Virus record (IMG/VR): IMGVR_UViG_3300046513_000221
Coordinates: 186,001 to 250,000 of that record
Direction: 5' to 3' (one strand)
Length of the DNA: 64,000 nt
Shown here: piece after piece, positions 1,655-63,536 of the stretch
Position numbering within the stretch: the stretch's first letter is position 1
Layout: every line of letters begins with the position of its first letter
Position numbers and translations under genes: made by a program
Notes under the pieces: model-generated
Seen by the model: only the letters and a program-made list of their open reading frames with translations
The model's database searches: none
Told to the model about the DNA's origin: nothing

Positions 1655-1684
1655 ACTGAGTGCGTTCCTCTAGGAATAGCATGG

Positions 1685-1716
1685 GCCTTCCCCGGTATCG
1701 GACGCTCGGGGAAGGC
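1685..1716. terminator. GC-rich hairpin
   Basis: GCCTTCCCCG / CGGGGAAGGC inverted repeat. Confidence 0.55.
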
Positions 1717-1790
1717 AACAGTGTATTTAGATAAAACTAGAATCGCGGTAATCCCGCCGCGATTCGTCGAACTTGAAAAGAGAAATCATC

Positions 1791-2381: not shown

Positions 2382-2394
2382 GAAGGAGAGCAGT

Positions 2395-3162: not shown

Positions 3163-3917
3163 GTATCCTCGACAGCCTGAAGAAGCTGGCGAAGGGGCTG
3201 AAGAAGCCCCACATCCGCTTCAAGTGCCACACAGGTGGCTACTACACGTCGCAGCCGGTGGTACTGGCACGATCGATTCTTCCCTACTGGCTGAAGAAGC
3301 AGATTCAGGCCAAGGAAGTGAAGTTCGTCCGGTGTCCGGGGATGCATGACCTTGCACAGCAGGGTTACCTCATCGTCGCACATGCAGACATTCACATCAA
3401 GGCCAACCGTCAGGTGACGCTGGTCGATGTACACGGCATTCCGGACAGCCTGAAGCCGCAGCCTATGGGCTACGATGTCGTGGACGGGCTTGCCCCGATC
3501 CGTGGCAACGTCGCAAAGAAAGTCACGAAGATCCCACTTCCGTGGTGCATCTTCACCGCTCCGGGTTATTCGGCTCACGTTCTCCCGGCGGTAAAGCACT
3601 CCCCATTCCTCGACAAGCTGTTCGTGTACGGAGGCGAGGTTGACTACGAGGGCTTCCACGTAGTCAACTTCATCTTCACCGCGATGGAGGAATGCGAGTT
3701 CACGATCCCTGCAGGAACCCCGCTGCTTCAGGTAATCCCCTTCAAGCGCGAGGACTTCCATGCCGAGGTCGGGAAGGCAACCGAGCTGGAACACGACCAG
3801 CATCGCTTCGCCTTCACATCCCGTGTGGTAGGTGCGTACCGTCGCATGTACCATGTCAAGAAACTTTTCACTATCAGGAACCAAAATGAGCGTGCTTTTC
3901 CACGTAAACAAAGCTGA
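3159..3917 (+). CDS. Paralog of 2395-3162 (degenerate dUTPase-like fold)
   Basis: ATGA overlap with previous stop; PYWLKK..RCPGMHD..GY, TAPGYSA, EVDYEGF..VNF, AGTPLLQVIPFKR. Confidence 0.55.
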   Translation: MSILDSLKKLAKGLKKPHIRFKCHTGGYYTSQPVVLARSILPYWLKKQIQAKEVKFVRCPGMHDLAQQGYLIVAHADIHIKANRQVTLVDVHGIPDSLKPQPMGYDVVDGLAPIRGNVAKKVTKIPLPWCIFTAPGYSAHVLPAVKHSPFLDKLFVYGGEVDYEGFHVVNFIFTAMEECEFTIPAGTPLLQVIPFKREDFHAEVGKATELEHDQHRFAFTSRVVGAYRRMYHVKKLFTIRNQNERAFPRKQS

Positions 3918-4335
3918 CAAGACCGTCTTCTTCGCAGGTCGTCAGCCAGAGACTGTCGGTACCACTATCACCGGCTTCAAGGACATGCCTTACGCGGAGA
4001 TCATGGATCTCGGCTATCTGGGTCTGCCCAACGAGGGCTTCCTGACCGAACAGGACGCACTGACCGCTGGCATCCCGGCGTCGGAAGTCCAGCGCATGAA
4101 GGATCTGGCCTACGAACTGGAGTGGACTCGCTTCAGCGAGCAGCGCGAGACGCTGATCACCGCCGTCCGCTGGCGCACCGACCGCCACAACGACGAAATC
4201 GCTCTGGACCGCGAGCCGAGCGAGGACATCACCCCTGTCCTGAACTACATTCAGGCACTGCGTGACCTGACCACGGCCTTCACCGATCCGTTCGAGATCG
4301 TGTGGCCGCAGGTACCGGCACTGCCGACCGCGTAA
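3886..4335 (+). CDS. Tail fibre assembly chaperone
   Basis: C-terminal YIQALRDL...IVWPQVP signature of phage tail-fibre chaperones; ATG 3886 with AGGA RBS. Confidence 0.75.
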   Translation: MSVLFHVNKADKTVFFAGRQPETVGTTITGFKDMPYAEIMDLGYLGLPNEGFLTEQDALTAGIPASEVQRMKDLAYELEWTRFSEQRETLITAVRWRTDRHNDEIALDREPSEDITPVLNYIQALRDLTTAFTDPFEIVWPQVPALPTA

Positions 4336-4341
4336 TATGAT

Positions 4342-4380
4342 ACCCATTGGACGTTCATTCGTCCAATGGGTCTTCTTATT
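4342..4380 (+). terminator. Rho-independent terminator
   Basis: 12-bp stem ACCCATTGGACG / CGTCCAATGGGT followed by a T-rich tract. Confidence 0.8.
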
Positions 4381-4384
4381 TGCC

Positions 4385-4397
4385 AACAGGGAAATAG
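4385..4397 (+). promoter_or_regulatory. Putative late promoter AACA-N6-TAG
   Basis: AACA GGGAAA TAG upstream of ATG 4413. Confidence 0.65.
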
Positions 4398-4412
4398 AAT
4401 CCGCCCCAAACA

Positions 4413-4934
4413 ATGGAGGAAAAATTGGCTGATAAACAAGTGAAAATATTCGTAGTCTTTAACCATGACTACATTCTCGGTAAGCTCACAAAATTCTTCA
4501 CCGGCTGCTATGCATATCACGCCGGATTTGTGGTGTTGGAAAGCGATGCTATCTATGACATGGGATGGCTGTGGCGAAAGATCAAGTACAGCGGCAAGTA
4601 CACCGACAAGCAGATCGTACTGTTCGATTTACCGGAAGGTGTTATCTTGACCGAGCAGGATTTGCTGGATGAAGTGATCAAGGGTGTTGCTGAGTTCAGT
4701 AACAACCAATTCAGTAACAGCCTCTACGGCTTCATGGACTACGTCGGCTTCCTGCTGCGTCCGTTCTACCACCTCGTAGGCAAGCCAACCCGCAACTTCG
4801 GCGGTAAGATCTGCACCGAGAAGATGAATGATATCCTTGTGGCCCACGGCTGGAAGGATTCGCCGTTCAATGAGGAAGTGCCTAGCCCGTGTGACTACGT
4901 GCGAGCCTTCAACATAGCGGATCCAAGCAACTAA
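4413..4934 (+). CDS. Permuted papain-like (YiiX/YaeF-type NlpC/P60) hydrolase-like protein
   Basis: His before Cys: YHAGFV ... YGF ... ICTEK ... PSPCD. Confidence 0.5.
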   Translation: MEEKLADKQVKIFVVFNHDYILGKLTKFFTGCYAYHAGFVVLESDAIYDMGWLWRKIKYSGKYTDKQIVLFDLPEGVILTEQDLLDEVIKGVAEFSNNQFSNSLYGFMDYVGFLLRPFYHLVGKPTRNFGGKICTEKMNDILVAHGWKDSPFNEEVPSPCDYVRAFNIADPSN

Positions 4935-5196: not shown

Positions 5197-6825
5197 ATGG
5201 CACTCCCAACCACTATCGGTCAGGCCCGTAACGGCAACTTGACCGCGATGAAGGCTCAGATCTTGCAGATCGATCCTACCACTGCCGGTCCTACCGAGCT
5301 GGTCAATCAGGCATCCCTGATGGCTCTGTACGGTCGTATTCAAGACTCCCTCTTCATCGATCTCGGTGACCCGACTTCGCTTGGCGATATCTCCAGTGGC
5401 GACTTGTCGTCCTTCCTGTCGAATATTAATAGCCTCGCAGACTTCAACGCACGCCTGAGCGACCAGACATGGTGCAACCTGCTGACCGGCAACGTCGGAG
5501 CTATGGCTACCGTATCCGGTTCCGTTACCGCTGTGACTGCATTGATCGCTGCACCAAAGGCTCTTACCGCCGCTTTAGCATCTAACGTCGCAATGACTGC
5601 GCTTATGGCTTCCAACGTATCCGTTTCGGTATTCGTTGGATCGTCGTCAGCTATGTCTTCGCTTGCAGCTTCGGTCACCGCATCGAACGCGATGGTAGCA
5701 TCGGTTACCATGATGAATGCTGTTGCAACTTCTGCGGTCTCCCGTACCGCGATCGGCAACGGTAGCGTCCAAAATGCTGGTTTCACGGCTATTGCCGCCT
5801 CTTCAATGGCTCTAGCTAAGTACGCCATTGGTCAAGCCGCTAATGCGTCCGGCGTTACCGATCCTTCGGCGTATGCCGATCTGACGGCTGTAACTGCATT
5901 GAGTTCGAGCCAGCATACGACATTCGCAACTAGCTATAGCGCTATCTACACCGTTCTCTCTAACTCGGCAGTTGGTATGGCCGCGTTGGTTGCATCGGTG
6001 GGCTTCATCACTTACGCCGGATCTCTGAGTGTTGCAAACAGCGTTAACAACGCTATGACTGCCTCGCAGTACAAAGTGGGTGCGTATCTGGACAAGATTC
6101 GCACTCAGATCGGCGGAGTGGGTAGCAACGCGAACCTCGCGGCTGCGAACACTGTAGCTCAGATCTCGGCGCTTGCGGCGGCTGATCTTACTGCCCTCTT
6201 CAGTGTAACTCAGGCTCGCCTGAACGTTCTGATCTCAGTCAGTGCGATGACAACTTTAGCAGCATCCGCTAACGCGATGGCAGTTCTGACCGCCAATTCT
6301 TCCTACATGACCACTGTGTGGAGTGTGGTTTCTGCAGCAACCATCATGTTCCAGAATACTGCTTCTCGCCAAGCAATGTGGACCAACGATCTGGCTTCGC
6401 TTGCTACTCTGCAAGCAAATCCAGCCACGGTCCAAGCTCTAATCAGTGCTAACGTATTCTCCAAGTTCATCTCGACCACTATCCCTCAGAAGATGACTGC
6501 CACGGGAGTCAAGACGATCCTGATCCGTCGATTCTACGGTACGAACGCAGGTGCGAGCGGTGATGAGTACGAATACATCAGCTACAAAAAGACTGGTGAT
6601 GGCGTAACCACAGGTGTGGGTAACGGGGTCTTCTCTCCGGATGGAACCCGTGGTCTCGCCCCCGGCAATTTAAGCACCGGTACTGTCGCCGGTGTTTATA
6701 CCAGTAATGGTGTTCGCCCCATTACTGACGATACCAGTGCAAATTTCGTCGCAGCGGCAAACGGTCTGGAACGTACTTCGTGGGCATACGGCCAGAACAT
6801 GACTGTCTACTACATCGCAGCATAA
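5197..6825 (+). CDS. Ala/Ser-rich helical-repeat tail fibre / receptor-binding protein candidate
   Basis: About 11-aa pseudo-repeats (ASxxAMxAL), beta-rich C-terminal tip, flanked by fibre chaperones; third-position GC visibly lower than core genes. Confidence 0.55.
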   Translation: MALPTTIGQARNGNLTAMKAQILQIDPTTAGPTELVNQASLMALYGRIQDSLFIDLGDPTSLGDISSGDLSSFLSNINSLADFNARLSDQTWCNLLTGNVGAMATVSGSVTAVTALIAAPKALTAALASNVAMTALMASNVSVSVFVGSSSAMSSLAASVTASNAMVASVTMMNAVATSAVSRTAIGNGSVQNAGFTAIAASSMALAKYAIGQAANASGVTDPSAYADLTAVTALSSSQHTTFATSYSAIYTVLSNSAVGMAALVASVGFITYAGSLSVANSVNNAMTASQYKVGAYLDKIRTQIGGVGSNANLAAANTVAQISALAAADLTALFSVTQARLNVLISVSAMTTLAASANAMAVLTANSSYMTTVWSVVSAATIMFQNTASRQAMWTNDLASLATLQANPATVQALISANVFSKFISTTIPQKMTATGVKTILIRRFYGTNAGASGDEYEYISYKKTGDGVTTGVGNGVFSPDGTRGLAPGNLSTGTVAGVYTSNGVRPITDDTSANFVAAANGLERTSWAYGQNMTVYYIAA

Positions 6826-6837
6826 CGAAAGAGAAAT

Positions 6838-7491
6838 ATGAAAATTGTAATCGACAAACTGACTAACAAAATCGTCGGTCTGACCTCCGCAGAGTTCGTT
6901 ACCGATGATCACAAGCTGATGGAATACCCTGCCAATTTCATCGAGTCCGAGCTGGATCTCTGGTACTTCGATGGTGAGAACTTGCTGCGTGACGCCAGTA
7001 AGGTACTGGTAATCGCCAAGGCGGAACGCAAGATCATCGTCAAGAAGGAAGCGGCGCAGCTGATTGCCGCCACTGACTGGAAGCTGTCGCGTGCCAAGGA
7101 ACGCCAGACTGCCGGGTGGGGATCCCTCGCCGAGATCGATGCGGTTCTGACCGAACGCGAGGCCATTCGTCGCTCCAGCGATATCGCAGAGCATGCCATC
7201 GATGCTCTGGAAACGGCATATCAGGCCGAGATGTTCCAGTGGAGTGTCACCGTCGCCGTCGCCGCCCCGAAGCGTCTGACCCACGTTGACTTCATGAAGC
7301 GCTTCTCCGACGACGAGATCGAGTCCGTTCTGGAAGCCGCCAAGACCAACGCGGCGTTGAACGCCTTCTGGGAGAAGTTCCGTCTGGCCGGTGACGTCAA
7401 CCTGCTGGATCCGATGACCATCGCCGGTGTTCAGGCTCTGGAGATCGCCACCATCCTGAATCCGGGACGTGCGGAAGAGATCCTCGCCTAA
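6838..7491 (+). CDS. Tail fibre assembly protein-like
   Basis: IAATDWK...R.AIR.S and C-terminal F..RFSDDE...VNLLDP.T.AGVQAL......GRAEEIL, typical of fibre-associated chaperones. Confidence 0.6.
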   Translation: MKIVIDKLTNKIVGLTSAEFVTDDHKLMEYPANFIESELDLWYFDGENLLRDASKVLVIAKAERKIIVKKEAAQLIAATDWKLSRAKERQTAGWGSLAEIDAVLTEREAIRRSSDIAEHAIDALETAYQAEMFQWSVTVAVAAPKRLTHVDFMKRFSDDEIESVLEAAKTNAALNAFWEKFRLAGDVNLLDPMTIAGVQALEIATILNPGRAEEILA

Positions 7492-7948: not shown

Positions 7949-9136
7949 CTAGTCTGGCCTCGCTAGGATCAGTTTTCTCTCGGCACGCGTGACGGCTGTG
8001 TAAAGCCATTTACGGTGTACCTTTCGATCTCTAGTCAGATGTTCCTCGATGATGATAGGCTTGTCGTATGAGCTACCTTGACTCTTGTGGCAGGAGATCG
8101 CCTCGGAGAAGTCCACCTTCAGCAGTCCGTGACTCTTCAGGTAATGGCGCTCCTCGTTGGCGTTGTTGAACGCCATGGAACCATCGAAGTAGAGCTTAAG
8201 ATCGATCGCGTTCGGGTTGTCAGTGCTACTGCCAGTGATCGTCGAGATCGGGATGCCGTCCGGACGGATGCAGCGATGCATCAGGCCGACCGAGTCCTTC
8301 AGCGCGAAGGTGTTCTGGTCCTCAGCGCTGGTCATCACCATGCCGTTGAACAGACCACGCTCGTGATCGTTCGCCAGAACCATGACGCGCTCACCCTCGC
8401 CGGGGTAGTTCTTGAACTTGAAGCCCTTCAACTTGCGCATCAGCTTGTTGAAGTAGTGACGCGTCTCGTTCTTACCTGTGATGATCTGGTCTGTCATCAT
8501 CAACAGGTCATCCGTCAGCTCCTCCTCGCGCACCACCAGAACACCGGCACCATACCTGCCGTAGCTGATATTCTTACCTAGCCTGATGTCGTGAGCGAGT
8601 CGGATGATCGGACTGTCCTCCGCCTGACGGTGGATCTTGATCAGAGCGGACTCCGCGTTCTCCATGAACTCCGCATCGCCATCGTCGCCGATAGGAGGCA
8701 GCTGACCGGAGTCGCCGACGTACAGTACCGGGACGCCAAAGCTCTCGATGTCCTGACGCATCGCCTTGGAGACCATCGAGGCCTCATCGACGATGATCAG
8801 GCTGTACAGATCGGCCACTTGGCTCTTGGAGCGACGGTTGAAGACGTAGTCTCCGTTCGGCAATTCCTCGGCCTCGTAGCAGAGGCTGTGGATGGTACCA
8901 GCCTGTGGAACACCCTTCTTGCGTAGTTCGCCAGCGGCCTTGTGGGTGTATGCCACGACCGCGATCTGTTTGTTGGTTCGGAAGTCGTCACACGCGATGA
9001 GAAACTTCATCAGCGCCGTCTTCCCGGTACCGGCGTAGCCCTTCAGCCTCCATGTAGGCTTGAGCTTGTCCGTGTACCACGTTCGTATCTCGAACAGAGC
9101 AATCTCTTGCTCCTGAGTTAAAACGATATCTGCCAT
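7949..9136 (-). CDS. SF1B ATP-dependent DNA helicase (Dda/RecD2-like)
   Basis: Walker A GYAGTGKT, TIHS, IIVDEASMV, GDSGQLPP, IHRQ, CHKSQGSSY, LYTAVTRA. Confidence 0.95.
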   Translation of the reverse strand: MADIVLTQEQEIALFEIRTWYTDKLKPTWRLKGYAGTGKTALMKFLIACDDFRTNKQIAVVAYTHKAAGELRKKGVPQAGTIHSLCYEAEELPNGDYVFNRRSKSQVADLYSLIIVDEASMVSKAMRQDIESFGVPVLYVGDSGQLPPIGDDGDAEFMENAESALIKIHRQAEDSPIIRLAHDIRLGKNISYGRYGAGVLVVREEELTDDLLMMTDQIITGKNETRHYFNKLMRKLKGFKFKNYPGEGERVMVLANDHERGLFNGMVMTSAEDQNTFALKDSVGLMHRCIRPDGIPISTITGSSTDNPNAIDLKLYFDGSMAFNNANEERHYLKSHGLLKVDFSEAISCHKSQGSSYDKPIIIEEHLTRDRKVHRKWLYTAVTRAERKLILARPD

Positions 9137-9226
9137 TTAAGTTCTTTCACCAGTTGCTGGGTGTTGAATCCTCAATTCCTTCGACGCGCTGCGACCAGCG
9201 CCGGATGATTTTGTCGTCAACGTTTA

Positions 9227-9237
9227 TATAATATATG
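9227..9237 (-). promoter_or_regulatory. Putative early promoter CATATATTATA
   Basis: + strand TATAATATATG, oriented toward the helicase; same motif at 11363, 33280, 53659, 63865. Confidence 0.65.
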
Positions 9238-9256
9238 TCCAAAACACGGTTACAAA

Positions 9257-10171
9257 ATGAGCCTAAAATCCATATCAGAAATCTCACGCGACGGTGTGAT
9301 GCGCGGCGTGGTCGTGAGTGTCAACGACCTCCAGCTTGAGGGCCGCGTGGCCCTCCACGTTCCGAAGATGGTCACCAAGTACGATCCGAAGAACGTACAG
9401 GTGCAGTCGCGTAAGAACTCCATCAACACCGACATCATCGCCAACGATGACTTCAAGGATCTTCTATCAGACTCCGTGGAGACGGTCAACTACATCTGGT
9501 TCCGCCCCCTCTTCCGGAGCAGCTTCATGGTGCCGTACGTCGGCATGACGGTACAGTGCTTCTTCGAGGACGGTGATCCAAACAAACCGTACTACTACCC
9601 GCACAACACGACGCTGAACGGCGAGGTCATCCCAATGACCAAGCTCAAAGCGACCGCCGACAAGTACGACGCGGCGACGAAGCCGCTCGTGCATGTGATG
9701 AACGAGTTCCAAGACGGTACCATTGTATACCACAACGAGAACAAGGCGAACAAGCGGTTCGCCGTCACGTTCCAGAACAACCACTCGTTCAGCATCAACG
9801 AGAACGAGAAGGAAAACAGCATTCAACTGATAACGGAGTCCGGCCACGAGCTGGTGCTGGATCAGAAGAATAAGCACATCACGGCCACGTCTGCCGGTCT
9901 GCACATGATCAAGATGGACGACGTGACTAGCACCATCACCGTCAAGACCACCGAGGGCCACACGGTCATCATGGACGATAAGGCAAGCTCGATCGTGGTG
10001 AAGACGATCAAGGGTCACACCATCAGCATGGATGATAAGGGAAAGAATATCCTCATCCAGACCACTGGCGGTCACAAGATCAACATGGACGACGGGGGCG
10101 CGACGATCACCGCCGAGGCAAGCTCCGGAGGCAAGGTGGTCATCGGCAACGGCAAAGTGATGATCAACTAG
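9257..10171 (+). CDS. Baseplate central spike (gp5/VgrG-like OB fold plus beta-helix, no lysozyme domain)
   Basis: RGVVVSVND...GRVALHVP...W..P...PYVG..V.CFFEDGDPNKPYY; 19-aa repeats IxxKTxxGHxIxMDD; ends VMIN. Confidence 0.85.
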   Translation: MSLKSISEISRDGVMRGVVVSVNDLQLEGRVALHVPKMVTKYDPKNVQVQSRKNSINTDIIANDDFKDLLSDSVETVNYIWFRPLFRSSFMVPYVGMTVQCFFEDGDPNKPYYYPHNTTLNGEVIPMTKLKATADKYDAATKPLVHVMNEFQDGTIVYHNENKANKRFAVTFQNNHSFSINENEKENSIQLITESGHELVLDQKNKHITATSAGLHMIKMDDVTSTITVKTTEGHTVIMDDKASSIVVKTIKGHTISMDDKGKNILIQTTGGHKINMDDGGATITAEASSGGKVVIGNGKVMIN

Positions 10172-53733: not shown

Positions 53734-55044
53734 ATGGATATCGAATCGAAGCTCTTCTCCTTGAAGGGTAGCGCTATCGACCTCAAGCTGCTGCATGAGC
53801 TCCTCGCCATAAACGAGAACGGCAAGCAGGTGGTCCACCAAAACACCAAGTTCGTACTAGACAAGGCCAAGCTCGAAGCGGCCGGATCGGAGATCCTCCT
53901 CCACAAGGACTTTGATAAGGAACTGGGCAAGGAGACGACCGTTGGCCGCTTCCTGTTCAATCTGCGCCTCTATGCCCTCTACGACCTCATGTACGAGGAT
54001 GTGGAACGGAGGAACAACCCGAAGCAGGTCGATGTGCGCAACAAATTCACTTACAAGAACATCACGCTTACCGCTAGCGCGATGGATGTACTGTATAAGG
54101 AGCTGACCGGGATGATGATCACCTCGGAGATCACTCCCCAAGTGTCGGCCCAGTTCATCGACAACCTGAACTGGATCGGCTTCGTGCTGGTACCCTACCT
54201 CAATCCTTCCCTCGACATCAAGTCGGTCAACGCCGGTCCCGAGATCCGCAAGATCAAGGCACAGGTGCTGGAGGAGCACAAGGACATCATCATCAACAAC
54301 GATGTGAAGAACTTCAACAGCGTGATCGAGGCCAAGGTGCTGAAGTCCGCTGCGGAGATCCTCGACAGGCAGCAGTCCACCGGTAAGATGATCTACGACT
54401 CCGGCGTCAATGGTACTTTCTCGAACAACTACAAGCTGACGGCCCTGTTCCGTGGCGTGGTTCCAAAGAGCGATGACCCGACGCAGTACAAGATCGGACT
54501 GTCGTCCCTGACAGACGGTGTGAGCAAGGACGAGATCGCCCTCGCGGGTGACATCGCGGTGCAAGGCTCCATCGGTCGTGCCATCTCGACGCGTCAAGGC
54601 GGTTACCTCGTCAAGCAGTTCAACTCGGCGTTCCAGTCCCTCGTGGTCGATGATCCCGGCACTAACTGCGGCTCCGTCCGCACGATCACCGTCGAGCTGG
54701 ACGACAAGAACTTCGGCCAGTACCTCTACCGCTACATCATCGACGGCGGTGTGGTCGTCCAACTGTCGCAGGACAACAAGTCGAAGTATGTCGGCAAGAA
54801 GGTCAAGCTGCGTACCCCGTTCTACTGCCGCACCGTCAAGATCTGCAACACCTGCGCCGGTGACATGCTCTACCGCCTCGGCATCAAGAACATCGGTCTG
54901 ACGACCTCCAACATCGGTTCCGCCCTGATGAATGCAGCGCTCAAGGCGTTCCACTCACTGGCCGTGAAGACCGCAAGCTACAACATCGAGGACTTCATGA
55001 GTGAAGTCAAACCATTCAACGGCAACAACAACGGAAAACAATAA
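53734..55044 (+). CDS. rpoC: Virion RNA polymerase beta' subunit, middle/C-terminal part
   Basis: TTVGRFLFN, SG..G, T..GGYL.KQ (bridge helix), NCG, LRTPFYC...ICNTCAG, NIG, LK.FH. Confidence 0.85.
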   Translation: MDIESKLFSLKGSAIDLKLLHELLAINENGKQVVHQNTKFVLDKAKLEAAGSEILLHKDFDKELGKETTVGRFLFNLRLYALYDLMYEDVERRNNPKQVDVRNKFTYKNITLTASAMDVLYKELTGMMITSEITPQVSAQFIDNLNWIGFVLVPYLNPSLDIKSVNAGPEIRKIKAQVLEEHKDIIINNDVKNFNSVIEAKVLKSAAEILDRQQSTGKMIYDSGVNGTFSNNYKLTALFRGVVPKSDDPTQYKIGLSSLTDGVSKDEIALAGDIAVQGSIGRAISTRQGGYLVKQFNSAFQSLVVDDPGTNCGSVRTITVELDDKNFGQYLYRYIIDGGVVVQLSQDNKSKYVGKKVKLRTPFYCRTVKICNTCAGDMLYRLGIKNIGLTTSNIGSALMNAALKAFHSLAVKTASYNIEDFMSEVKPFNGNNNGKQ

Positions 55045-55745
55045 TGGCACTATTCCTTCAAGTCCCGGCTGTGCCGGAAGAGATTCCCGTGGAGATCAAG
55101 AGCTTCGGCGAGGCCATGCTCTCCCTGTACAACACTACGTCCGAGTTCCACACCGACCTCCTGAGTGAGGGCGTCGTGGGCGATATCTTCGAATCGGTGA
55201 AGAAGCTGATCATGTCGATCATCAACACTGTCATGAAGGTTCTGCGCTTCCTGCGCGAGAAGCTGACCGCCGCGTTGAGCTGGATCGTAGGAAAATCCGT
55301 GTCGGTGCCTGTGGCCGTGATCGCTTACTGGCAGAACACCCTGTCAGCGTGCGATGCGGCGCTGTTGGACCTCACCAGTAACATCCACGGTGACTGGGCC
55401 GACTTCAACACACTCCGTAACATCCACGATCAGAAGATCCGGGAACCGTTTAATGCCATCCCGAAGAGCGGTGGTGCGACCAAGATCTTCAGCAAGGACG
55501 ATATGTCCAAGCTGATCAATCTGGCATCGGAGACGGTGGACCTGTCCAAACAAGCCGCTGAGATCTACAAGAACGAGCTGCAGGAACTGGAAGCCGCCAA
55601 GGGCAAAATCCCCGACGACGAGTATCAGACCGAATTCAAGGTACTGCACGCCAAGTGCATCTTCATGCAGTTCATCGTCACGAATTGCGTAGGCGTGATC
55701 CAGTCGATCGCGCACCACGGCAAACAGACCGTGGAAGCGTTCTAA
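55044..55745 (+). CDS. Probable internal head (ejected) protein, phiKZ inner-head type
   Basis: LLSEG..DIFESVKKLI..I..V.K.L amphipathic pattern after an S-x-E cleavage-like site; translationally coupled to the vRNAP gene. Confidence 0.5.
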   Translation: MALFLQVPAVPEEIPVEIKSFGEAMLSLYNTTSEFHTDLLSEGVVGDIFESVKKLIMSIINTVMKVLRFLREKLTAALSWIVGKSVSVPVAVIAYWQNTLSACDAALLDLTSNIHGDWADFNTLRNIHDQKIREPFNAIPKSGGATKIFSKDDMSKLINLASETVDLSKQAAEIYKNELQELEAAKGKIPDDEYQTEFKVLHAKCIFMQFIVTNCVGVIQSIAHHGKQTVEAF

Positions 55746-55790
55746 AGAAATAACCCCATAGGCCCGTAAAGGGTCTATGGGGGTTTCTTA
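55746..55790. terminator. Bidirectional terminator
   Basis: CCCCATAG / CTATGGGG family hairpin. Confidence 0.8.
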
Positions 55791-56609
55791 CTGCTGTATG
55801 TTACCTCTGTTCATCAAGCCCTGCTTGGTGACAAGCGAGCCGGTGATCAGGTTCGATTTTAGACCAGCGCCGATGAAGAACACATCGAGCGTGTTCAGTG
55901 CCTGACCGGAGTGCAGGACGCTGTTCTTGTAGGTCGAGATCGATGCGGTGCCGAGTGCGGAGATCTCCGCTTGCATCTGCATCTTGTGGTTGATGTTGTC
56001 GGCGCGAGCACCCAGCAGCTCCTTGATGATGTAGTTGTCACCGGTCTTGCCTTCCAGCTTGTTGGCGACGTCGGTCATCCAGTTGAACTGGTCGCTGACG
56101 TTGTTGGTCACCGCCAGCAGAGCCGTGGTGTCACCGTCCGTCAGGCGTCCGGTACGCTCGGTCGTGGACAGGGAGCCGGTCAGCTTGGAACGAGCACCCG
56201 CCTTCATGATGTCGGTGTTCATCATGTTCTTCTTGGACAGGATCTGCTGCATCCGCTTGAGGTGGATGTACATCACCGGAACCTTGAATGGCGTGCGGAC
56301 GACCTGACCGTCAGGCGTGGTGTGCCGGACGTACACGAACTCCTCCAGAGGCAGCTTCAGATACTTCGCAGCGGCCTCCACGGTGTCCATGTTGATCTTC
56401 TTCTTCTCGTAGAGGTCCATCTCGACGTAGAAGTTGTTGTTGTCGCTCGAAGCCATCTTGCGGAAGTACGCCATGAACTGGGCGTCCGACATCTTGTCGA
56501 ACTGGGCTTTGTACTTGGCGGCATTCTTGCCGGAAGGATCGAGAATCTTCAGGGTAGTGAGGATTTTATCCTCAACCTGTTTTCTTTTCTGAGGTGTGAT
56601 CGATGCCAT
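55788..56609 (-). CDS. rpoB: Virion RNA polymerase beta subunit, C-terminal fragment
   Basis: VPVMYIHLKRMQQILSKKN, R..LTG, L.D.D..ALLA, KELLGAR.D, LDVFF.G.GL. Confidence 0.75.
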   Translation of the reverse strand: MASITPQKRKQVEDKILTTLKILDPSGKNAAKYKAQFDKMSDAQFMAYFRKMASSDNNNFYVEMDLYEKKKINMDTVEAAAKYLKLPLEEFVYVRHTTPDGQVVRTPFKVPVMYIHLKRMQQILSKKNMMNTDIMKAGARSKLTGSLSTTERTGRLTDGDTTALLAVTNNVSDQFNWMTDVANKLEGKTGDNYIIKELLGARADNINHKMQMQAEISALGTASISTYKNSVLHSGQALNTLDVFFIGAGLKSNLITGSLVTKQGLMNRGNIQQ

Positions 56610-56617
56610 TGAATTTC

Positions 56618-57109
56618 CTATTTCAGTTCAAGCGTATACTGTCCGAGAAACGCCTTAGCGTCTATGGTTTCTACCCGGATGATCTCACGCTTAGGGATAT
56701 GCTGGTCCGTCTTGTACTCATCGACGGCATTGTTGAACTTGTTATTCACCGGGATGAATCTATCCGGAGCGATACAGTACACGTAGAACTGCTTGACTCG
56801 CTCAATATCGGTCGTCGATATCGGTGAATAGCCCTCGATGGTCATGATGCCCTTCTCAGTCTTAAATCGCCTGACTTCCAGACCGATTTGTGTCAGAGAC
56901 GAGGCAAAGCCCATCTCAGCGGCTAGCTGGCGTCCCGCAGATGCATACAAGAACTTGTTGCTCTCAGTCTCGTCCCACTGTATCTCTGCCTTGGTATGAT
57001 CGATTCCCGGTTTGAGGGTGTCGGTCAAATAGTACGATCCATGGTAGAGAACGAGTGGATTGACTTTCTCGCTAAGCAAAAACCTGATCATATGGTCGGT
57101 ATTCATCAT
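56618..57109 (-). CDS. ADP-ribosyltransferase-fold protein (H-Y-E type) candidate
   Basis: LYHGS...LKPG...LYAS...A...G...YVY.I....F...DEY; N-terminal LSE. Confidence 0.5.
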   Translation of the reverse strand: MMNTDHMIRFLLSEKVNPLVLYHGSYYLTDTLKPGIDHTKAEIQWDETESNKFLYASAGRQLAAEMGFASSLTQIGLEVRRFKTEKGIMTIEGYSPISTTDIERVKQFYVYCIAPDRFIPVNNKFNNAVDEYKTDQHIPKREIIRVETIDAKAFLGQYTLELK

Positions 57110-57112
57110 AGA

Positions 57113-58303
57113 TCACCGGCATTTGTGGAGCACTATGAGATAAACAAAGTAGGAATACACCGCGTTGCGGTAGGCCATCTTCGTCGGGATGCGGTTCGTG
57201 GCAGCGTACTTACTGCAGTGCAGCATCAGGAACTTATCGAGGATCACCTTGATCTGGATCAGATCCTGATTCGTGGTGTTCGAGATCGAGATCTGGCGCA
57301 GGGCCATGGTGATGAAGTCCGAGCTACAGACCTTCTCGAACGCCTGTGGATCGGCATCGGAGATGATGTTGAAGAGCATACGGAGCATGCTGTCCAGTGT
57401 CTCAGGGTTCTCCTTGATGCGGATCTCGTTGAGCGCCTGATAGACCGTCATGAACGGCAGATTGTTCTTGTTGCTGACCAGCTTCGTCAGACCCATGTTG
57501 ATCTTCATCGACACGTAGTCGTGGACGACGGACTGCGCCAGCTGGTGGATGGTGTCGGACAGGTTGGTCTTATCGACCATCTCGTCCTTGTCATCGAACG
57601 ACTTCTCGGTGTTCAGGTAGTTCTTCTTGTCGCGGTTGTCGTAGTACTCCTCCGCGATGCCGTTGATGATCTTACCGATCCGGTTCTCCATCTGAGGGAT
57701 GTACGTCAGGTACGCCTCGTCGGTGCCGTCGGTCAGGATGCGCTTGTACGTCTCGTGGGACGTCATCACCGTGTCCTTGATCACGTTGTAGTTGTTCTGC
57801 AGCTGCTTGTACTTGAACTTGTTGCTCAAGTTGTTCATGGTATACGCCATGATCTGCGGGTTCGGCGGGAACTGCCAGCTGCGGCGCTGGCGTGAGGAGA
57901 AGAACTTCATCGACAGGTACATGATGAAGAGCTGGGCTTCAGTATCCTTCTTTTGGATCGTCAGTTCGCGGATCACGAGCCACGACAGCATGGTGAACGG
58001 GTCGTTCAGCAGCACGAATGCCTCGCCACGCTTGTTCACATAGCCGAATTCCTTGACGTTATCCTTGAGTGTGGACACGATGTAGCCCGACACCTCCTCC
58101 GGCGCGATGTCCGTGAGATCGAACACCACGTTCTGGTCTTTCACCGCGAAGATGAGACGCTGGGCCGGGGAGCTGTCGAAGATGATTGCGTGGTTGGCAT
58201 CGAAGTACTTCTGGATGCTGAGAACGGCGGCGCGCAGCTTGGCCTTGTCGTTCACTGCTTCCTTGATGCGTTCTTCAAAACCTTTGATGATGTAGGAAGA
58301 CAT
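57113..58303 (-). CDS. Conserved jumbo-phage hypothetical protein (late)
   Basis: About 396 aa, strong codon bias, late promoter. Confidence 0.7.
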   Translation of the reverse strand: MSSYIIKGFEERIKEAVNDKAKLRAAVLSIQKYFDANHAIIFDSSPAQRLIFAVKDQNVVFDLTDIAPEEVSGYIVSTLKDNVKEFGYVNKRGEAFVLLNDPFTMLSWLVIRELTIQKKDTEAQLFIMYLSMKFFSSRQRRSWQFPPNPQIMAYTMNNLSNKFKYKQLQNNYNVIKDTVMTSHETYKRILTDGTDEAYLTYIPQMENRIGKIINGIAEEYYDNRDKKNYLNTEKSFDDKDEMVDKTNLSDTIHQLAQSVVHDYVSMKINMGLTKLVSNKNNLPFMTVYQALNEIRIKENPETLDSMLRMLFNIISDADPQAFEKVCSSDFITMALRQISISNTTNQDLIQIKVILDKFLMLHCSKYAATNRIPTKMAYRNAVYSYFVYLIVLHKCR

Positions 58304-58344
58304 ATTTCTTCTTTCGGAAAAGTGTTGCCGCACAATGGTGCTTA

Positions 58345-58357
58345 CTAGTCTATTGTT
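58345..58357 (-). promoter_or_regulatory. Putative late promoter AACA-N6-TAG
   Basis: Minus strand AACA ATAGAC TAG upstream of the 58303-ART-vRNAP operon. Confidence 0.65.
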
Positions 58358-58434
58358 AACCAGAAAGCTGTTTTCCTTTAGAAGTAAAGAAAAAAAGAAG
58401 CGCCAACGCCCGGATGTGGACGTTGGCGGTTTTC

Positions 58435-59043
58435 TTAGATCGACAGCATGTTGATCAGGCGGGTCAGGGTCTCGTTGTCACGGGACGCTGCGATCAGCTC
58501 GGCGTCGATGTTCTGGTGCAGCGAGGAACGGTTCTCGTTCGCCGGGATCGAGTCCTGCAGGGTGCGTTCGTGAGCGGCCAGAACCGGCGTCAGGCGCTTC
58601 TCCAGTTCCACCAGCAGTTCAGCACGGCGCTGGGTCTGCTCGCCCAGAGCTTGAACTGCGATGGAGATGCCGGAGCTGGCGTGCGATGCACGGACGATGC
58701 TGGTGGTGTTGACTGCGGATGCCTTGATACCGAAGGTCTTCGGGGTTGCAGCATCTGCGAGCAGCTGCATCTGCTTACCCAGATCCATTGGATCCCGGAC
58801 GGTATCGCGGTCGCTCGTCGGCGATGCTTCCGTCACACCGTCGCTCAGATCCTGAATCGAGCGTGCGGCGCGGCGCGGCTTGATAGCTACGGATACAGCG
58901 ATGCCGCCGATGTGGCGGGTACGTGGCTTCTTCGGTGTAGTTTCCACTTGGGCAGCTGCCTTGGCGGCGCGGCGGGTGGCGACAGTTTCCGGAGTCTTCG
59001 CCTTCGGGATACGACGGGTGGTAGTTGCTTGTTGCTTAGGCAT
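58435..59043 (-). CDS. Hypothetical protein with basic low-complexity N-terminus
   Basis: GGAGG RBS; K/R/T/A-rich N-terminus, coiled-coil C-terminus. Confidence 0.7.
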   Translation of the reverse strand: MPKQQATTTRRIPKAKTPETVATRRAAKAAAQVETTPKKPRTRHIGGIAVSVAIKPRRAARSIQDLSDGVTEASPTSDRDTVRDPMDLGKQMQLLADAATPKTFGIKASAVNTTSIVRASHASSGISIAVQALGEQTQRRAELLVELEKRLTPVLAAHERTLQDSIPANENRSSLHQNIDAELIAASRDNETLTRLINMLSI

Positions 59044-59098: not shown

Positions 59099-59500
59099 TT
59101 ACACTGGTGCTGCGACGACGTGGGTCGGCTTCTTCGGGTCGATGTAGACCTCGCGGCACAGGTCGGCGAAGTCGGACTCGGTGAAGCCGCGATCCAGCAT
59201 CACTTTCTTGACGCGGTTGAGGAATTTACCTTCCTCTTCCACTTTCTTGCGGTTAGCTTCCTCGCGACGATCGGCTTCATCGCGAGCGCTCATTTCCTTG
59301 AACATCTGGTCGGGACTACGGCGGTAGGTCTCCAGATCGTTACGGTCCAGCATATCGCCTTCGGTCAGACGAACCTCACCGACAGTACTCTTCGGATCCG
59401 CCAGATCGTAGCGACGAATCTCGGTGGTCCCGCCAGAGGCGGTGATGGTCAACAGGTGGGCCTTCTTTGGACCGCTGTCGCTACGCAGACTGCTATTCAT
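59099..59500 (-). CDS. Hypothetical protein
   Basis: AAGGA RBS at 59500. Confidence 0.7.
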   Translation of the reverse strand: MNSSLRSDSGPKKAHLLTITASGGTTEIRRYDLADPKSTVGEVRLTEGDMLDRNDLETYRRSPDQMFKEMSARDEADRREEANRKKVEEEGKFLNRVKKVMLDRGFTESDFADLCREVYIDPKKPTHVVAAPV

Positions 59501-59564
59501 GTTTGATTCCTTCAGGTTAAGAGGGAGGAGTGCCCAGACAACAGGCACTCCTCTCACTCAGGTT

Positions 59565-62408
59565 TTACTGACAGGCTTCGCATTCCTCGAAGCCGGGGTC
59601 GCCCGGACGCATGTAGCATGCGGCACCGGCGTCAGCCTCACCTGCACCCGGAACAGCGACAGGAGCCGCTGCGACAGGTACATTGGACTGTACCGCGTTC
59701 AGTTCACCGCCCCGGCCAGTCGATTTCTCGGCGGAGGTAGCGGAGGTGGTACGCAGGTAGTAGGTGGTCTTCAGACCGCGCTGCCATGCCAGCTTGTAGG
59801 TGGCATCCAGCTTCTTGCCGGAAGCACCGGCCATGTAGATGTTGAGGCTCTGCGCCTGATCGATCCACTTCTGACGGCGAGCTGCCGCCTCGATCAACCA
59901 TTCCGGAGCGATCTCGAACGCCGTTGCATAGACGTCCTTGATGCTCTGTGGGATGCGGCTGATCTTCTGGATCGAACCGTCGTAGAACTTGATGTCCGAG
60001 ATCATGACCTCGTCCCACAGGCCCAATTCTTTCAGGTCGGCAACCAGATAGCGGTTGATGATCGTGAACTCGCCGGACAGGTTCGACTTGACGAACAGGT
60101 TCTGGAAGGTCGGCTCGATGCACGCCGATACGTCGATGATGTTACTGATCGTCGCGGTCGGAGCGATAGCGAGGCAGTTCGAGTTGCGCATGCCGTGGTA
60201 CTTGATGCGCTGACGCAGCTCGTCCCACACCGATTCGCCGTAGAAGCTGTCGGTGTTGATGGTCAGGTACTCGGCACCGCGCTCTTCGGCCAGCAGACGC
60301 TGGGAGTCCTGCGGCAGAATGCCCTTGGACCACAGCGAGCCTTCGAACGTGAAGTAGCGACCGCGCTCGATAGCCATGTCGCACGACGACGAGTAGGCGT
60401 GGTACGCGATCATTTCAGTCGATTTGTCCGCGAACAGGACGGCATCTTCCGAAGCGTACGGGACGTGCATCATCTGCAAGCAGTCCTGGAAACCCATCAT
60501 GCCCAGACCGACAGGGCGGTGGCGCATGTTGGAGTTCTTTGCCTTCTCGACCGAGTAGAAGTTCAGGTCGATGACGTTGTCCAGAATGCGCATTGCAGTC
60601 TTGACGGTCTTCGCCAGTTTCGACTCGTCGATGTCGTACACCGGTGCGCCGGTGATGGCATCGTTGCCGATCTTGATCATGTGAGCGACCAGATTGACGG
60701 AGCCAATGTTGCATACGGCGATCTCGTCGGCGCTGGTGTTCAGGGTGATCTCGGTACACAGGTTCGAGCTGTGAACGACGCCCATGTGCTGCTGCGGCGA
60801 ACGGATGTTGCACGGATCCTTGAAGGTGATCCATGGGTGGCCGGTCTCGAACAGCATCGACAGCATCTTGCGCCACAGATCGACGGCCTTGACGGTCTTG
60901 AACAGCTTGATCTCGCCGGTCTGCGTCTTGCGCTCGGCGTTGGTGTAGGCGGTCTCGAATGCGCGACCGAACAGATCGTGCAGGTCGGTGACGTCGGAAG
61001 GCGAGAACAGGGTCCATTCACCCTTCTCCATGACACGCTTCATGAACAGATCGGGGATCCAGTTCGCGGTGTTCATGTCGTGAGTACGACGGCGCTCATC
61101 GCCGGTGTTCTTACGCAGGTCGAGGAATTCCTCGATGTCGAGGTGCCACGTTTCCAGATAGGCGCAGACAGCGCCCTTGCGCTTGCCGCCTTGGTTCACG
61201 GCGACGGCGGTGTCGTTCACCACCTTCAGGAACGGTACGACGCCTTGCGACTTGCCGTTCGTTCCCTTGATGCGAGCGCCCAGCGAACGAACTGGAGTCC
61301 AGTCGTTGCCCAGACCGCCAGCCCACTTCTGCAAGCGAGCGTTGTCGTGGATACCGTCGTAGATGCCGTCCAGATCATCGCTGATCGTGGTCAGGAAGCA
61401 CGATGCCAGCTGCGGACGCGTAGTACCGGAGTTGAACAGCGTTGGGGTGGAATTCATGTACTCGAACTGCGACAGCAGGTCGTAGAACTCGATGGCGCGA
61501 GCTTCGCGGTCGGACTCGTTCAGGGCCAGACCCATAGCCACGCGCATCCAGAAGATCTGCGAGGACTCGTAACGAACTTCTTCCTGATGCAGGAAGTAGC
61601 GGTCGTACAGGGTTTGCAGACCGATGAAGCTGAACTGCGCATCGCGTTCCCACTTCAGGGCCGCTTGCAGACGGTCCAGATCGTAGGTTGCCATTGCCGG
61701 TTGCAGCATTTCCAGCTTGACGCCCAGCTCGATCGATGCGCGCAGCACCTGATCGCGTTCCGGTTTGTTCAGGTGGAAGAAGACTTCCTTGTGGATGTCA
61801 TCGGCCAGCAGACGTGCAGTCACTTGATTGTACTGCGGCTCGGTCTCGATGAAGCCACGAGCGGCCATCAGGACAGCCTTGTCGATCTCGGCTTCGGTGA
61901 CGCCGTTGTACAGCTGCTGGTACATCACATCGAAGATGGCGTCCGGGTTAACGTTGTCCAGACCCTTGCAAGCGTCCTTGATGCGGATGCGCAGGTAAGC
62001 GGTCGATACGATACCCTCGGTACCGTCGGTGTTGATCATGCGCATCTTGATTGCGCCGCCGTTGTCGTGGCCCACTTCGCGCTCGGCGCGGTGGCGGTTG
62101 CGGTAGATGACGTAGTCACGTGCCACATCGTGCAATGCGGAGCGCATCATGTACAGTTCGACGGTGTCCTGCACGGTCTCGATGTTGACGGCGGTCAGGC
62201 CGGAGCGTTCGCAGGAGGCTTCCAGATGTTTGACGATGTCGATGGTCAGGGTAGCTGCCAGTTCGCGCTCGCCTTGCGACAGGACGCCAGCGCTGTTGCG
62301 CAGTTGACCATCGGCATCCTTCAGCATTGCTTGCAGGATTGCGTTGGTGATCTTTTCCGCTGCGAAAGGCACTACGTTACCATCGCGTTTGATAATCTTA
62401 TCCAGCAT
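59565..62408 (-). CDS. nrdA: Ribonucleotide reductase class Ia alpha subunit with two ATP cones
   Basis: IKRDG ATP cone, STPTLFNSG, QLASC, GGLG, NLCTEI, CNIGS, APTATIS, TTYYLR. Confidence 0.98.
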   Translation of the reverse strand: MLDKIIKRDGNVVPFAAEKITNAILQAMLKDADGQLRNSAGVLSQGERELAATLTIDIVKHLEASCERSGLTAVNIETVQDTVELYMMRSALHDVARDYVIYRNRHRAEREVGHDNGGAIKMRMINTDGTEGIVSTAYLRIRIKDACKGLDNVNPDAIFDVMYQQLYNGVTEAEIDKAVLMAARGFIETEPQYNQVTARLLADDIHKEVFFHLNKPERDQVLRASIELGVKLEMLQPAMATYDLDRLQAALKWERDAQFSFIGLQTLYDRYFLHQEEVRYESSQIFWMRVAMGLALNESDREARAIEFYDLLSQFEYMNSTPTLFNSGTTRPQLASCFLTTISDDLDGIYDGIHDNARLQKWAGGLGNDWTPVRSLGARIKGTNGKSQGVVPFLKVVNDTAVAVNQGGKRKGAVCAYLETWHLDIEEFLDLRKNTGDERRRTHDMNTANWIPDLFMKRVMEKGEWTLFSPSDVTDLHDLFGRAFETAYTNAERKTQTGEIKLFKTVKAVDLWRKMLSMLFETGHPWITFKDPCNIRSPQQHMGVVHSSNLCTEITLNTSADEIAVCNIGSVNLVAHMIKIGNDAITGAPVYDIDESKLAKTVKTAMRILDNVIDLNFYSVEKAKNSNMRHRPVGLGMMGFQDCLQMMHVPYASEDAVLFADKSTEMIAYHAYSSSCDMAIERGRYFTFEGSLWSKGILPQDSQRLLAEERGAEYLTINTDSFYGESVWDELRQRIKYHGMRNSNCLAIAPTATISNIIDVSACIEPTFQNLFVKSNLSGEFTIINRYLVADLKELGLWDEVMISDIKFYDGSIQKISRIPQSIKDVYATAFEIAPEWLIEAAARRQKWIDQAQSLNIYMAGASGKKLDATYKLAWQRGLKTTYYLRTTSATSAEKSTGRGGELNAVQSNVPVAAAPVAVPGAGEADAGAACYMRPGDPGFEECEACQ

Positions 62409-62495
62409 GTCTTATTCCTTCAGAATTGGAAGAGGAGAGCCGACAACCGGCCCTCCATTACTACGGGTACTATCTTGTTACGGTGATACGGGATA

Positions 62496-63536
62496 TCAGT
62501 CGTCCCAGTCGTCCAGCTTACCGCCGACCTGATAGTCAACGACGCGGGTCTCGAAGAAGTTCTTCTCCTTCTTCAGGTCGATCATCTCCGACATCCACGG
62601 GAACGGGTTCTCCTCGCCGGGGAACATCGGGTCCAGACCGATCTGCAGCAGACGGCGATTGGCGATGAAGCGCAGATAGCCTTTGAACATGCTAGCGTTC
62701 AGGCCCAGCACGCCGTTCGGCATGGTGTCCTCGGCGTACGCGTACTCCAGATCGACCGCCTTGGTAAACAGGGTGCGGATCTCGGCGACGAACTCGGCGG
62801 TCCACAGGTGCGGATTCTCCATCTTGATCGTGTTGATCAGGTCGATGCCGAAGTTGCAGTGCATGGACTCGTCGCGGAGGATGTACTGGTACTGCTCGGC
62901 AGCGCCAGTCATCTTGTTCTGGCGACCCATCGACAGGATCTGCGCGAAGCCGACGTAGAAGAACAGGCCTTCCATGATGCATGCGAAGACGATCAGCGAC
63001 TTCAGCAGCTTCTGGTCGTTCTCCATTGTACCGGTCTTGAAGGCCGGGTCAGTCAGGGTGTCGATGAACGGGATCAGGAACTGGTCCTTGTCGCGGATCG
63101 ACTTGACTTCGTTGTAGGCGTTGAACAGCTCGCCTTCGTCCATGCCGAGCGACTCGACGATGTACTGGTAGGCGTGGGTGTGAATTGCTTCCTCGAACGC
63201 TTGGCGCAGGAGGTATTGGCGACATTCAGGGGCCGTGATGTGACGGTAGGTACCGAGCACGATGTTGTTTGCTGCCAGCGAGTCGGCGGTGACGAAGAAG
63301 CCGAGGTTGCGCTTGATGATACGGCGCTCGTCGTCGGACAGGCCGTCCTTGCTCTTCCACAGCTCGATGTCGCGCTGCATGCTGATCTCTTGCGGCATCC
63401 AGTGGTTCGCGCAGCCGTTCAGGTACTTATCCCATGCCCACTTGTACTTGAAAGGTACCAGTTGGTTGACATCGGTCTGACCATTGATGATGCGCTTGTC
63501 AGCGGCGTTCACTCGCCCCAAGTTGCTAGTTTCCAT
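62496..63536 (-). CDS. nrdB: Ribonucleotide reductase class I beta subunit
   Basis: [38 protein letters not shown]. Confidence 0.97.

Follow-up and report, generated by a model that had tools for sequence, protein, structure and literature searches.

A predicted ADP-ribosyltransferase-fold protein encoded as an accessory gene in the virion RNA polymerase operon of a jumbo phage

The P0001 Gene and Its Conserved Residues

The window analysed in this study is a stretch of 64,000 nucleotides (positions 186,001 to 250,000) of the virus record IMGVR_UViG_3300046513_000221, a complete genome of 263,413 bp with direct terminal repeats and 55% G+C. DNA of this soil jumbo phage was present in rhizosphere metagenomes from three studies, and the homologies of the genes that neighbour the one described here place it, by sequence, with Yersinia phage phiR1-37 and more distantly with AR9/PBS1. 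On the minus strand of the window, at positions 56618–57109, lies an open reading frame (ORF), P0001, coding for a protein of 163 residues that belongs to the family of phrog_13483 and phiKZ gp282 and has a predicted ADP-ribosyltransferase (ART) fold. The ORF exactly fills the space between two flanking genes, a phiR1-37 g205 homologue upstream and a homologue of a virion RNA polymerase (RNAP) subunit gene downstream. An earlier note on this DNA, made from the letters alone, had proposed a small ART-fold protein at this place, and both the ORF and the four strings that it quoted (YHGS, LYAS, DEY and LLSE) were located in the 163-residue translation.

Automatic gene callers place the start of P0001 at Met7. 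The sequence GGTGATC is found just upstream of Met1/Met2 and nothing comparable precedes Met7, and for this reason Met1/Met2 is favoured as the start. The G+C contents at the third, first and second codon positions of the frame (GC3 0.64 > GC1 0.48 > GC2 0.34) are those of a gene, and over the whole window it is this GC1/GC2/GC3 pattern that tells true frames from false ones. Long spurious antisense ORFs of up to 1020 residues, such as those at 59424–62486 and 56996–57895 on the plus strand, run across the window because of the strong GC3 skew of the real genes (GC3 about 0.8).

Conservation was counted in an alignment of 133 standalone relatives, one per cluster of 50% identity. The residues of interest are carried by three predicted strands, all P0001 coordinates being on the minus strand. 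The first strand is LYHGS (residues 21–25, 57035–57049), in which H23-x-S25 corresponds to ART motif 1, the ribose-contacting H-x-S/T motif of the H-type ARTs (PMC8120803); H23 was kept in 128 of the 129 relatives with a residue at this position, and S25 in 125, with Thr in two more. The second strand, LYAS (residues 54–57, 56939–56950), contributes Y55 as motif 2, which was invariant (133/133). The third, EYKT (residues 131–134, 56708–56719), lies within DEYKT (residues 130–134, 56708–56722) and opens with E131 at the position of the catalytic Glu, motif 3; this residue was kept in 130 relatives, the exceptions being two Gln and one Leu, and its strand comes directly after the only less confident loop of the model. 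Between the first and second strands, the loop WDETESN (residues 45–51, 56957–56977) was conserved at W45 and D46 (125 relatives each), E49 (129) and N51 (132). These four positions, together with Y111, N126, K133 (122 relatives) and T134 (124), are near-invariant and constitute the family signature.

In the model, the order of strands and residues is the layout of ART motifs 1, 2 and 3. The H-Y-E triad claimed in the earlier note was in agreement with these results, since near-invariant residues occupy the three motif positions at a frequency far above chance. An offset count from the printed alignment starts, which is not a residue-level alignment, lands H23 on R9 of pertussis S1, R7 of LT and H862 of PARP1, and in hhalign, with a low probability, the LYHGT strand of E. 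coli KptA was aligned to LYHGS. The site would be of the diphtheria-toxin/PARP type, that is His-Tyr-Glu, and catalysis with nicotinamide adenine dinucleotide (NAD+) by P0001 is more likely than not. In such a reaction H23 and S25 would grip the NAD+ ribose, Y55 would stack on the nicotinamide side, and E131 would drive cleavage of the nicotinamide-ribose bond, the ADP-ribose then being passed to an acceptor.

Predicted Fold

An AlphaFold2 model of P0001, built with 19 relatives, reached a mean predicted local distance difference test score (pLDDT) of 90.9 and a predicted template modelling score (pTM) of 0.82. The pLDDT fell to 72 in residues 121–130, and the loop of residues 114–130 was the less confident part. 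The model was compared with the PDB by Foldseek and with 48,161 representative chains by VIA-align. The top Foldseek rows were Rhs ART toxins, cholera toxin/LT, pertussis S1, Tpt1, Arr, CC0527 and RES, ARTs making up nearly the whole list. Rows 1 to 11 of VIA-align were all ARTs with Z scores from 7.8 to 5.4, to be read with the program's own caveat that a Z of 7–8 is often reached by models without a true match. In a second structural look, Tpt1 of A. pernix was the best match (Z 8.4, root-mean-square deviation 2.2 Å over 83 residues, 18–21% identity), and Arr-2 (Z 7.7) was aligned over 106 residues spanning positions 16–163 of P0001; 87 chains had a Z of at least 5, and among the matches listed 50 out of 50 were ARTs. 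Scabin and DarT were also found among the structural matches, and a search of a viral structure library returned the family itself first, followed by DarT-like and Arr-like phage proteins. The Foldseek check that had been suggested for the ART-fold claim was thus run, every top structural match being an ADP-ribosyltransferase, and we consider it very probable from the model that P0001 adopts this fold.

Searches of Pfam, NCBIfam, PADLOC and PDB sequences, performed with the single sequence and with the profiles A1 and A2, gave chance matches only (cystatin, Hox, sidekick), and for the family members scanned no Pfam ART model appeared at E ≤ 1 among the matches listed. DUF6886 (PF21820) had no match in P0001 or in its genome, and matched one of the 133 relatives at a weak E of 0.028; clusters of DUF6886 were close to P0001 in language-model features (0.96) and had a TM of 0.54–0.58 in structure, which makes DUF6886 a lead. 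On the basis of the model, P0001 and its relatives are a new sequence family within the well-known ART superfamily.

Family Members and Fusions

The sole profile matched by P0001 was phrog_13483 (function unknown), with an E of 1.1e-18 over residues 17–157. Its alignment with phiKZ gp282 covers 91% of the query at 30% identity (E 4e-11). An exhaustive profile search over 1.84 billion representatives gave 188 clusters. The annotated tblastn matches were all from Pseudomonas or Erwinia jumbo phages (65 of 65), with no T4-like phage among them, and 20 IMG/VR loci of the family were nearly all on contigs of 250–320 kb. A scan of cellular-genome contigs with the narrow signature WD[EVK]TESN[KR][FY] gave no cellular genome, which is only weak evidence for a family restricted to phages, and a search of viral contigs for related loci with the g205-like protein returned no relative. 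As far as these sequences indicate, the family is so far confined to jumbo phages and comprises about 190 clusters at 50% identity. No published function was found in the literature for any member of the phrog_13483 / phiKZ gp282 family.

Several relatives are fused to other domains. In seven clusters the ART-like domain is joined to a superfamily 2 (SF2) helicase of the ResIII/SNF2/Helicase_C type, which is the conserved phiKZ-like "DEAD-like helicase" of 206 phage records. At locus L016 the helicase gene and the family gene are neighbours, and at eight further loci the former lies within 6 kb on the same strand. The 266-kb contig IMGVR_UViG_3300037721_000031 carries two family paralogues (L016 and L019), one of them directly downstream of an SF2 helicase gene. 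The product of phiR1-37 g207 and its homologue in the window phage were considered as helicases and rejected, there being no helicase Pfam match and a tail-tube-like gene adjacent.

In one cluster, P0037, the ART-like domain is fused to a YAcAr SLOG domain, for whose family the use of nucleotides derived from NAD+ has been predicted (PMC7824862). P0157 joins the ART-like domain to a homologue of the 436-residue virion RNAP subunit of the window (phrog_2962, E 1e-89). In P0044, P0065, P0079 and P0084, leaders of 34–58 residues rich in SLE, ALE and AME precede the ART-like domain, which is followed by a domain of about 300 residues with weak matches to virion or internal-head-protein PHROGs; the P0084 gene is itself followed by a phiKZ_IP (PF12699) gene. 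The motif S/A/G-x-E is that of the phiKZ and SPN3US protease (PMC5694885, PMC10052503).

The Virion RNA Polymerase Operon

P0001 lies in a three-gene unit on the minus strand. The upstream partner (57113–58303) codes for 396 residues from the ATG at 58303, the frame being open from a GTG at 58333; it belongs to phrog_2921 and is 41% identical to phiR1-37 g205, which is flagged as structural in the phiR1-37 record. The downstream partner (55788–56609, 273 residues, phrog_3233) is 49% identical to its homologue phiR1-37 g203, likewise flagged as structural and annotated as RNAP beta, and is also homologous to the RNAP part of AR9 gp077. Both g205 and g203 are structural proteins verified by mass spectrometry. 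AR9 gp077 is annotated as an HD family phosphohydrolase and virion RNAP subunit that is proteolysed, the RNAP domain alone being found in virions. The ATG of P0001 comes 3 nt after the stop of the upstream gene, and its stop 8 nt before the ATG of the downstream gene. On the plus strand, the convergent neighbour at 53734–55044 (436 residues) is a homologue of phiR1-37 g231, whose annotation reads "RNA polymerase beta subunit, phage structural protein".

The unit is bracketed by terminator-like hairpins. One of them, at 58401–58428 on the minus strand, ends the preceding unit upstream of the operon, and the other, at 55754–55782, is bidirectional and closes both the operon and the convergent plus-strand unit. 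Two late-promoter-like matches to the AR9 consensus AACA-N6-T[A/G] (PMC5312081), AACAATAGACTA at 58346–58357 and AACAGCTTTCTG at 58361–58372, both on the minus strand, are located 42 and 57 nt ahead of the g205-like ATG. Genome-wide, the motif occurs in the 120 nt before genes 48 times in the sense and 19 times in the antisense direction, and its intergenic density is twice the intragenic one. No promoter-like motif was found within 120 nt upstream of P0001 itself. Since the gene has no promoter-like motif of its own and is separated from its structural neighbours by gaps of 3 and 8 nt, P0001 can only be made together with them. The promoter of the operon is presumably a late one, and the earlier note's assignment of P0001 to a late operon, beside a gene for virion RNAP, is supported by the structural homologues on both sides and by the AACA-N6-TA motif.

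Other features of the region were recorded. Genes for the large and small subunits of a class I ribonucleotide reductase are located at 59565–63536 on the minus strand, amid blocks of structural genes, with tail sheath-like and tail tube-like genes past the end of the window on one side and the virion RNAP operon on the other. Between the reductase genes and the operon there are two minus-strand ORFs, at 58435–59043 (202 residues) and 59099–59557 (152 residues), with no PHROG match. In the whole genome, the 12-mers CGAACTACAACC and GGGTTCGTGCCA, plus neighbours, recur 7–10 times.

Presence and Absence of P0001 in Related Strains

The GC3 of P0001 (0.64) is at the 10th percentile, in the lowest decile of the 298 called genes (median 0.75), and its operon partners have GC3 values of 0.86 and 0.82. 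In run X3, from an independent rhizosphere study, one contig carries the P0001 gene at a depth of 27.9. A 151-nt contig of the same run, from a strain about 92% alike and with a depth of 18.1, joins position 56615 to position 57120 with seven other letters between them, so that the stretch 56616–57119 is skipped. Read on the minus strand, the g205-like gene of this strain ends with Cys and Arg in synonymous codons, then TAG as its stop, and the start of the g203-like gene follows at once. From this codon reading, the difference between the two strains amounts to the P0001 ORF and 5 flanking bases (56616–57112), and both flanking genes are intact in the strain devoid of P0001. In phiR1-37 the same slot is occupied by an unrelated structural protein of 505 residues, g204, with a HEIGH motif (5487–7004 of the compared locus), which is absent from the window genome.

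P0001 is an accessory gene that is not required to make the virion or its polymerase, because the related strain that lacks the ORF retains the neighbours. Its presence/absence polymorphism in soil populations provides a natural comparison for the benefit that the gene brings to the phage.

The N-Terminal Leader

The first 14 residues of P0001, MMNTDHMIRFLLSE (57068–57109), had been proposed to be a prohead-protease propeptide ending in LLSE (residues 11–14). A short helix is predicted in this segment with middling confidence, and the segment is not conserved, the median relative having five residues ahead of the LYHGS strand. The residues L12-S13-E14 fit L/I-x-E and not S/A/G-x-E, and the site fails the rule of the phiKZ-type protease because P3 is Leu instead of Ser, Ala or Gly. 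Within residues 5–25, L-x-E is present in 14% of the proteins of this phage and [LI]-x-E in 23%. P0001 contains neither the S/A/G-x-E propeptide sites nor the internal-head-protein domain of processed head proteins of the phiKZ type.

Two sites in related phages point to another specificity. In AR9 gp077 (1679–4774 of the compared locus), the N-terminal HD-like part (a weak Pfam HD match) is annotated as cleaved off, and the boundary QLLE/ATPK coincides with the start of the free-standing g203-like protein. In phiR1-37, sp24/g199 (8737–9516 of the compared locus) is mature from residue 56, after L-T-E; its record says "Asp56" and the deposited ORF has Glu at 56, and the position alone was used. 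The AR9/phiR1-37 clade may therefore cut after L-x-E, unlike the S/A/G-x-E of phiKZ, a rule drawn from these two sites only. Under it LLSE/K would qualify, with a chance expectation of about 1 protein in 7, and the closest leader-bearing relative, P0132, has QLALE/EK. With the leader unconserved and the match at chance level, the proposal of a 14-residue propeptide was not upheld, and cleavage after E14 appears improbable from the sequence. Packaging could nevertheless proceed in its absence, since most head proteins of SPN3US are uncleaved; a cleaved propeptide would be neither needed nor indicated for delivery.

LLSE is also present (residues 39–42) in a 233-residue protein encoded at 55044–55745 on the plus strand, whose only PHROG match is a weak one to a tape-measure group (E 0.006). 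Homology of this protein to the processed sp24/g199 of phiR1-37 was not shown (BLASTP E 0.44).

Delivery and Target

The reading that we favour, with a rough probability of 0.55, is that P0001 is an accessory, minimal ART-fold enzyme of the H-Y-E type, made late and carried with the virion RNAP or the head contents. Its mRNA would be a late one of three genes, the other two coding for a structural protein and a piece of the virion RNAP. Being co-translated with virion genes, the protein would most likely enter the next cell along with the virion RNAP or other contents of the head, and would act there at the very start of infection. In phiKZ the same timing would be obtained by early synthesis of gp282, and in some uncultured phages by head-protein-like fusions with protease-cleavable leaders or by the virion RNAP fusion. 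What we propose as common to these cases is a need for the protein at the onset of infection, which would be covered by synthesizing it early or by bringing it in with the virion. Packaging of P0001 in the virion is by itself plausible, at a little under an even chance, and it is favoured by two kinds of relatives, those joined to a virion RNAP subunit and those with head-protein-like domains and leaders that bear protease motifs.

As acceptor, our best guesses are the end of a nucleic acid or a host protein linked to transcription, because of the recurrent fusion or adjacency to helicase and RNAP and because the closest folds are Tpt1/KptA, Arr and Scabin. Retargeting of the host RNAP in the manner of T4 Alt is not an obvious use, given that jumbo phages transcribe with their own polymerases. 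Outside the window, the same genome contains a 164-residue ORF (144673–144999, minus strand) with a match to the Macro domain PF01661 that is barely above the cut-off (23.2 bits, E 1.1e-5) and with no NADAR or ADP-ribosylglycohydrolase match; its product is a possible reader or eraser of an ADP-ribose mark.

A number of observations weigh against this favoured reading. With respect to the enzyme, P0001 matched no curated ART sequence family (Pfam, NCBIfam, PADLOC and PDB profiles), the Foldseek E-values are weak (best 6.5e-3), and the Z scores are middling and in a range that may reflect a common arrangement, so that the case for the fold rests on top matches that are all ARTs and on the conserved triad; in addition, the clustering of H23, Y55 and E131 in space is something that we infer from the model. 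With respect to delivery, the core is preceded by no more than 10 residues in 97 of 153 relatives, which speaks against packaging as a rule for the whole family, and phiKZ gp282 lies among small genes, of which gp280 and gp287 are reported as early or rapidly made, and is not mentioned as a virion protein in the literature searched. According to the AR9 annotation, the enzymatic HD part fused to the same RNAP subunit is removed by cleavage and does not occur in virions, the RNAP fusion of P0157 is known from a single metagenomic contig of 4.4 kb, and the late-promoter motif is short and only 2.5-fold enriched.

The same enzyme might instead be an unpackaged cytoplasmic accessory ART, engaged in counter-defence or host takeover as AcrIF11 is on Cas8f, with an accidental place in the operon; we regard this as possible, on the unlikely side. 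Accessory or anti-defence cassettes typically vary in presence between strains and deviate in GC3, as P0001 does, the phiKZ homologue is in an early-gene block, and in about 10 phiKZ-like loci the family gene is the lone plus-strand gene amid small minus-strand genes. Most relatives are without a leader, and AcrIF11 is listed as a phage ART (PMC8120803). However, P0001 has no promoter-like motif of its own in the 120 nt ahead of it and is only 3 and 8 nt from its structural neighbours, and among the relatives there are fusions with head-protein-like domains and with a virion RNAP subunit. Neither a PADLOC nor an anti-defence family was matched, and AcrIF11 was absent among the fold matches listed.

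An ART directed to nucleic acids, working with the phage transcription or helicase machinery and modifying, like Tpt1/KptA, DarT and Scabin, either a base or the 5′-phosphorylated ends of RNA or DNA, is also rather unlikely. The closest fold is the NAD lobe of Tpt1/KptA (Z 8.4), with Scabin and DarT matched as well, and fusion or adjacency to the SF2 helicase is repeated while fusion to an RNAP subunit was seen once. Bacterial Tpt1 modifies 5′-P RNA in vitro (PMC8120803), and Iyer et al. tie a jumbo-phage SF2 helicase, perhaps another one, to RNAP genes (PMC7824862). Against this, P0001 is without the N-terminal winged-helix lobe, and none of the near-invariant columns of the alignment is an Arg, which means that it does not have the Arg-His-Arg-Arg tetrad of Tpt1. 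Fusion alone cannot name the substrate, because injected polyvalent proteins join helicase and ART for co-delivery and not for a common substrate (PMC7824862), and the window phage has no detectable copy of the fused-type SF2 helicase.

The slot between the g205-like and g203-like genes could be a swappable cargo position, with the ART family acting as a transcription-coupled modifier of nucleic acids or RNAP; we hold this to be doubtful. The position would harbour an ART-fold enzyme here, a HEIGH-motif protein in phiR1-37, an RNAP-fused HD hydrolase in AR9 and nothing in the sister strain. The ART enzyme would accompany either the virion RNA polymerase or the SF2 helicase of the phage, and its action would fall in the first seconds of infection. 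If true, this would be a new use of NAD+ chemistry by jumbo phages that are autonomous for RNAP.

It is hardly likely that P0001 is a non-catalytic ART-fold module, either a binder of NAD+ or ADP-ribose or an adaptor for assembly or packaging of the virion RNAP, in which the triad would serve for binding only. The operon and the fusions do tie the family to pieces of the virion RNAP, and minimal Tpt1-like and CC0527-like ART domains have unclear roles. The motif-3 Glu, however, is kept in 130 of 133 diverged sequences together with the His and the Tyr, which is the pattern of an active enzyme, and the gene-less related strain has both RNAP-operon neighbours intact, which means that P0001 is not required for assembly. 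That P0001 is no gene at all but a chance open frame in a GC3-skewed genome, as the many long antisense ORFs of the window might suggest, is refuted by the 188 homologous clusters, the confident model, the gene-like GC pattern and the exactly filled gap between two genes.

Significance and Comparison with Known Systems

The analysis proposes a testable function, NAD+-dependent ADP-ribosylation through H23, Y55 and E131, for a family that is unannotated in Pfam, NCBIfam and PADLOC and to which phiKZ gp282 belongs, as do genes from jumbo phages of Pseudomonas and Erwinia that are in culture. Should P0001 be merely another host-modifying ART, this would be a useful annotation and no surprise. The fusion partners of the relatives, namely a helicase, a virion RNAP subunit and head-protein-like domains, suggest a new class of target or a new route of delivery, and the significance would grow if the acceptor were a nucleic acid or the transcription machinery of the phage itself.

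The nearest known counterpart is phiKZ gp282 (phrog_13483), of the same sequence family and size and with the same conserved motifs as P0001. In phiKZ, Noxifer, Phabio and pPa_SNUABM_DT01, however, the family gene is not beside RNAP or structural genes, whereas P0001 is inside an operon of virion genes.

Outside the family, the NAD+ lobe of Tpt1/KptA is the best structural match, and the LYHG[ST] strand is common to both. Tpt1/KptA proteins differ in having an N-terminal winged-helix lobe, an H-H-h motif and the Arg-His-Arg-Arg tetrad (PMC8120803), while P0001 is a single-domain H-Y-E protein with no conserved Arg. Arr is of minimal size like P0001 (about 140 residues), matches in structure over the whole domain, and has an H-Y-D triad near to H-Y-E. 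It shows no sequence similarity to P0001, has Asp and not Glu at motif 3, and is a bacterial resistance gene product acting on a small-molecule antibiotic.

T4 Alt has the ART fold that is predicted for P0001, and the life history proposed for the latter is alike: made late, carried in the head and acting on arrival. Alt, ModA and ModB are of the R-S-E cholera-toxin type, much larger, and have no homology to P0001, in which neither a capsid-targeting sequence nor cleavage is indicated. The H-Y-E against R-S-E residues and the lack of sequence similarity are in agreement with the view of the earlier note that P0001 is unrelated to Alt. AcrIF11 is, like P0001, a small stand-alone accessory ART of phages with a divergent H-type site (H-H-D), but it differs in motifs 2 and 3, is known from prophages and not from virion operons, and was absent among the fold matches listed. 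Finally, the injected polyvalent proteins described by Iyer, Burroughs and Aravind (PMC7824862) join ART, SF2 helicase and Zn-peptidase domains and are delivered with the phage DNA. Relatives of P0001 are fused to a helicase and the phiR1-37 slot holds a HEIGH-motif protein, whereas P0001 itself is small and free-standing.

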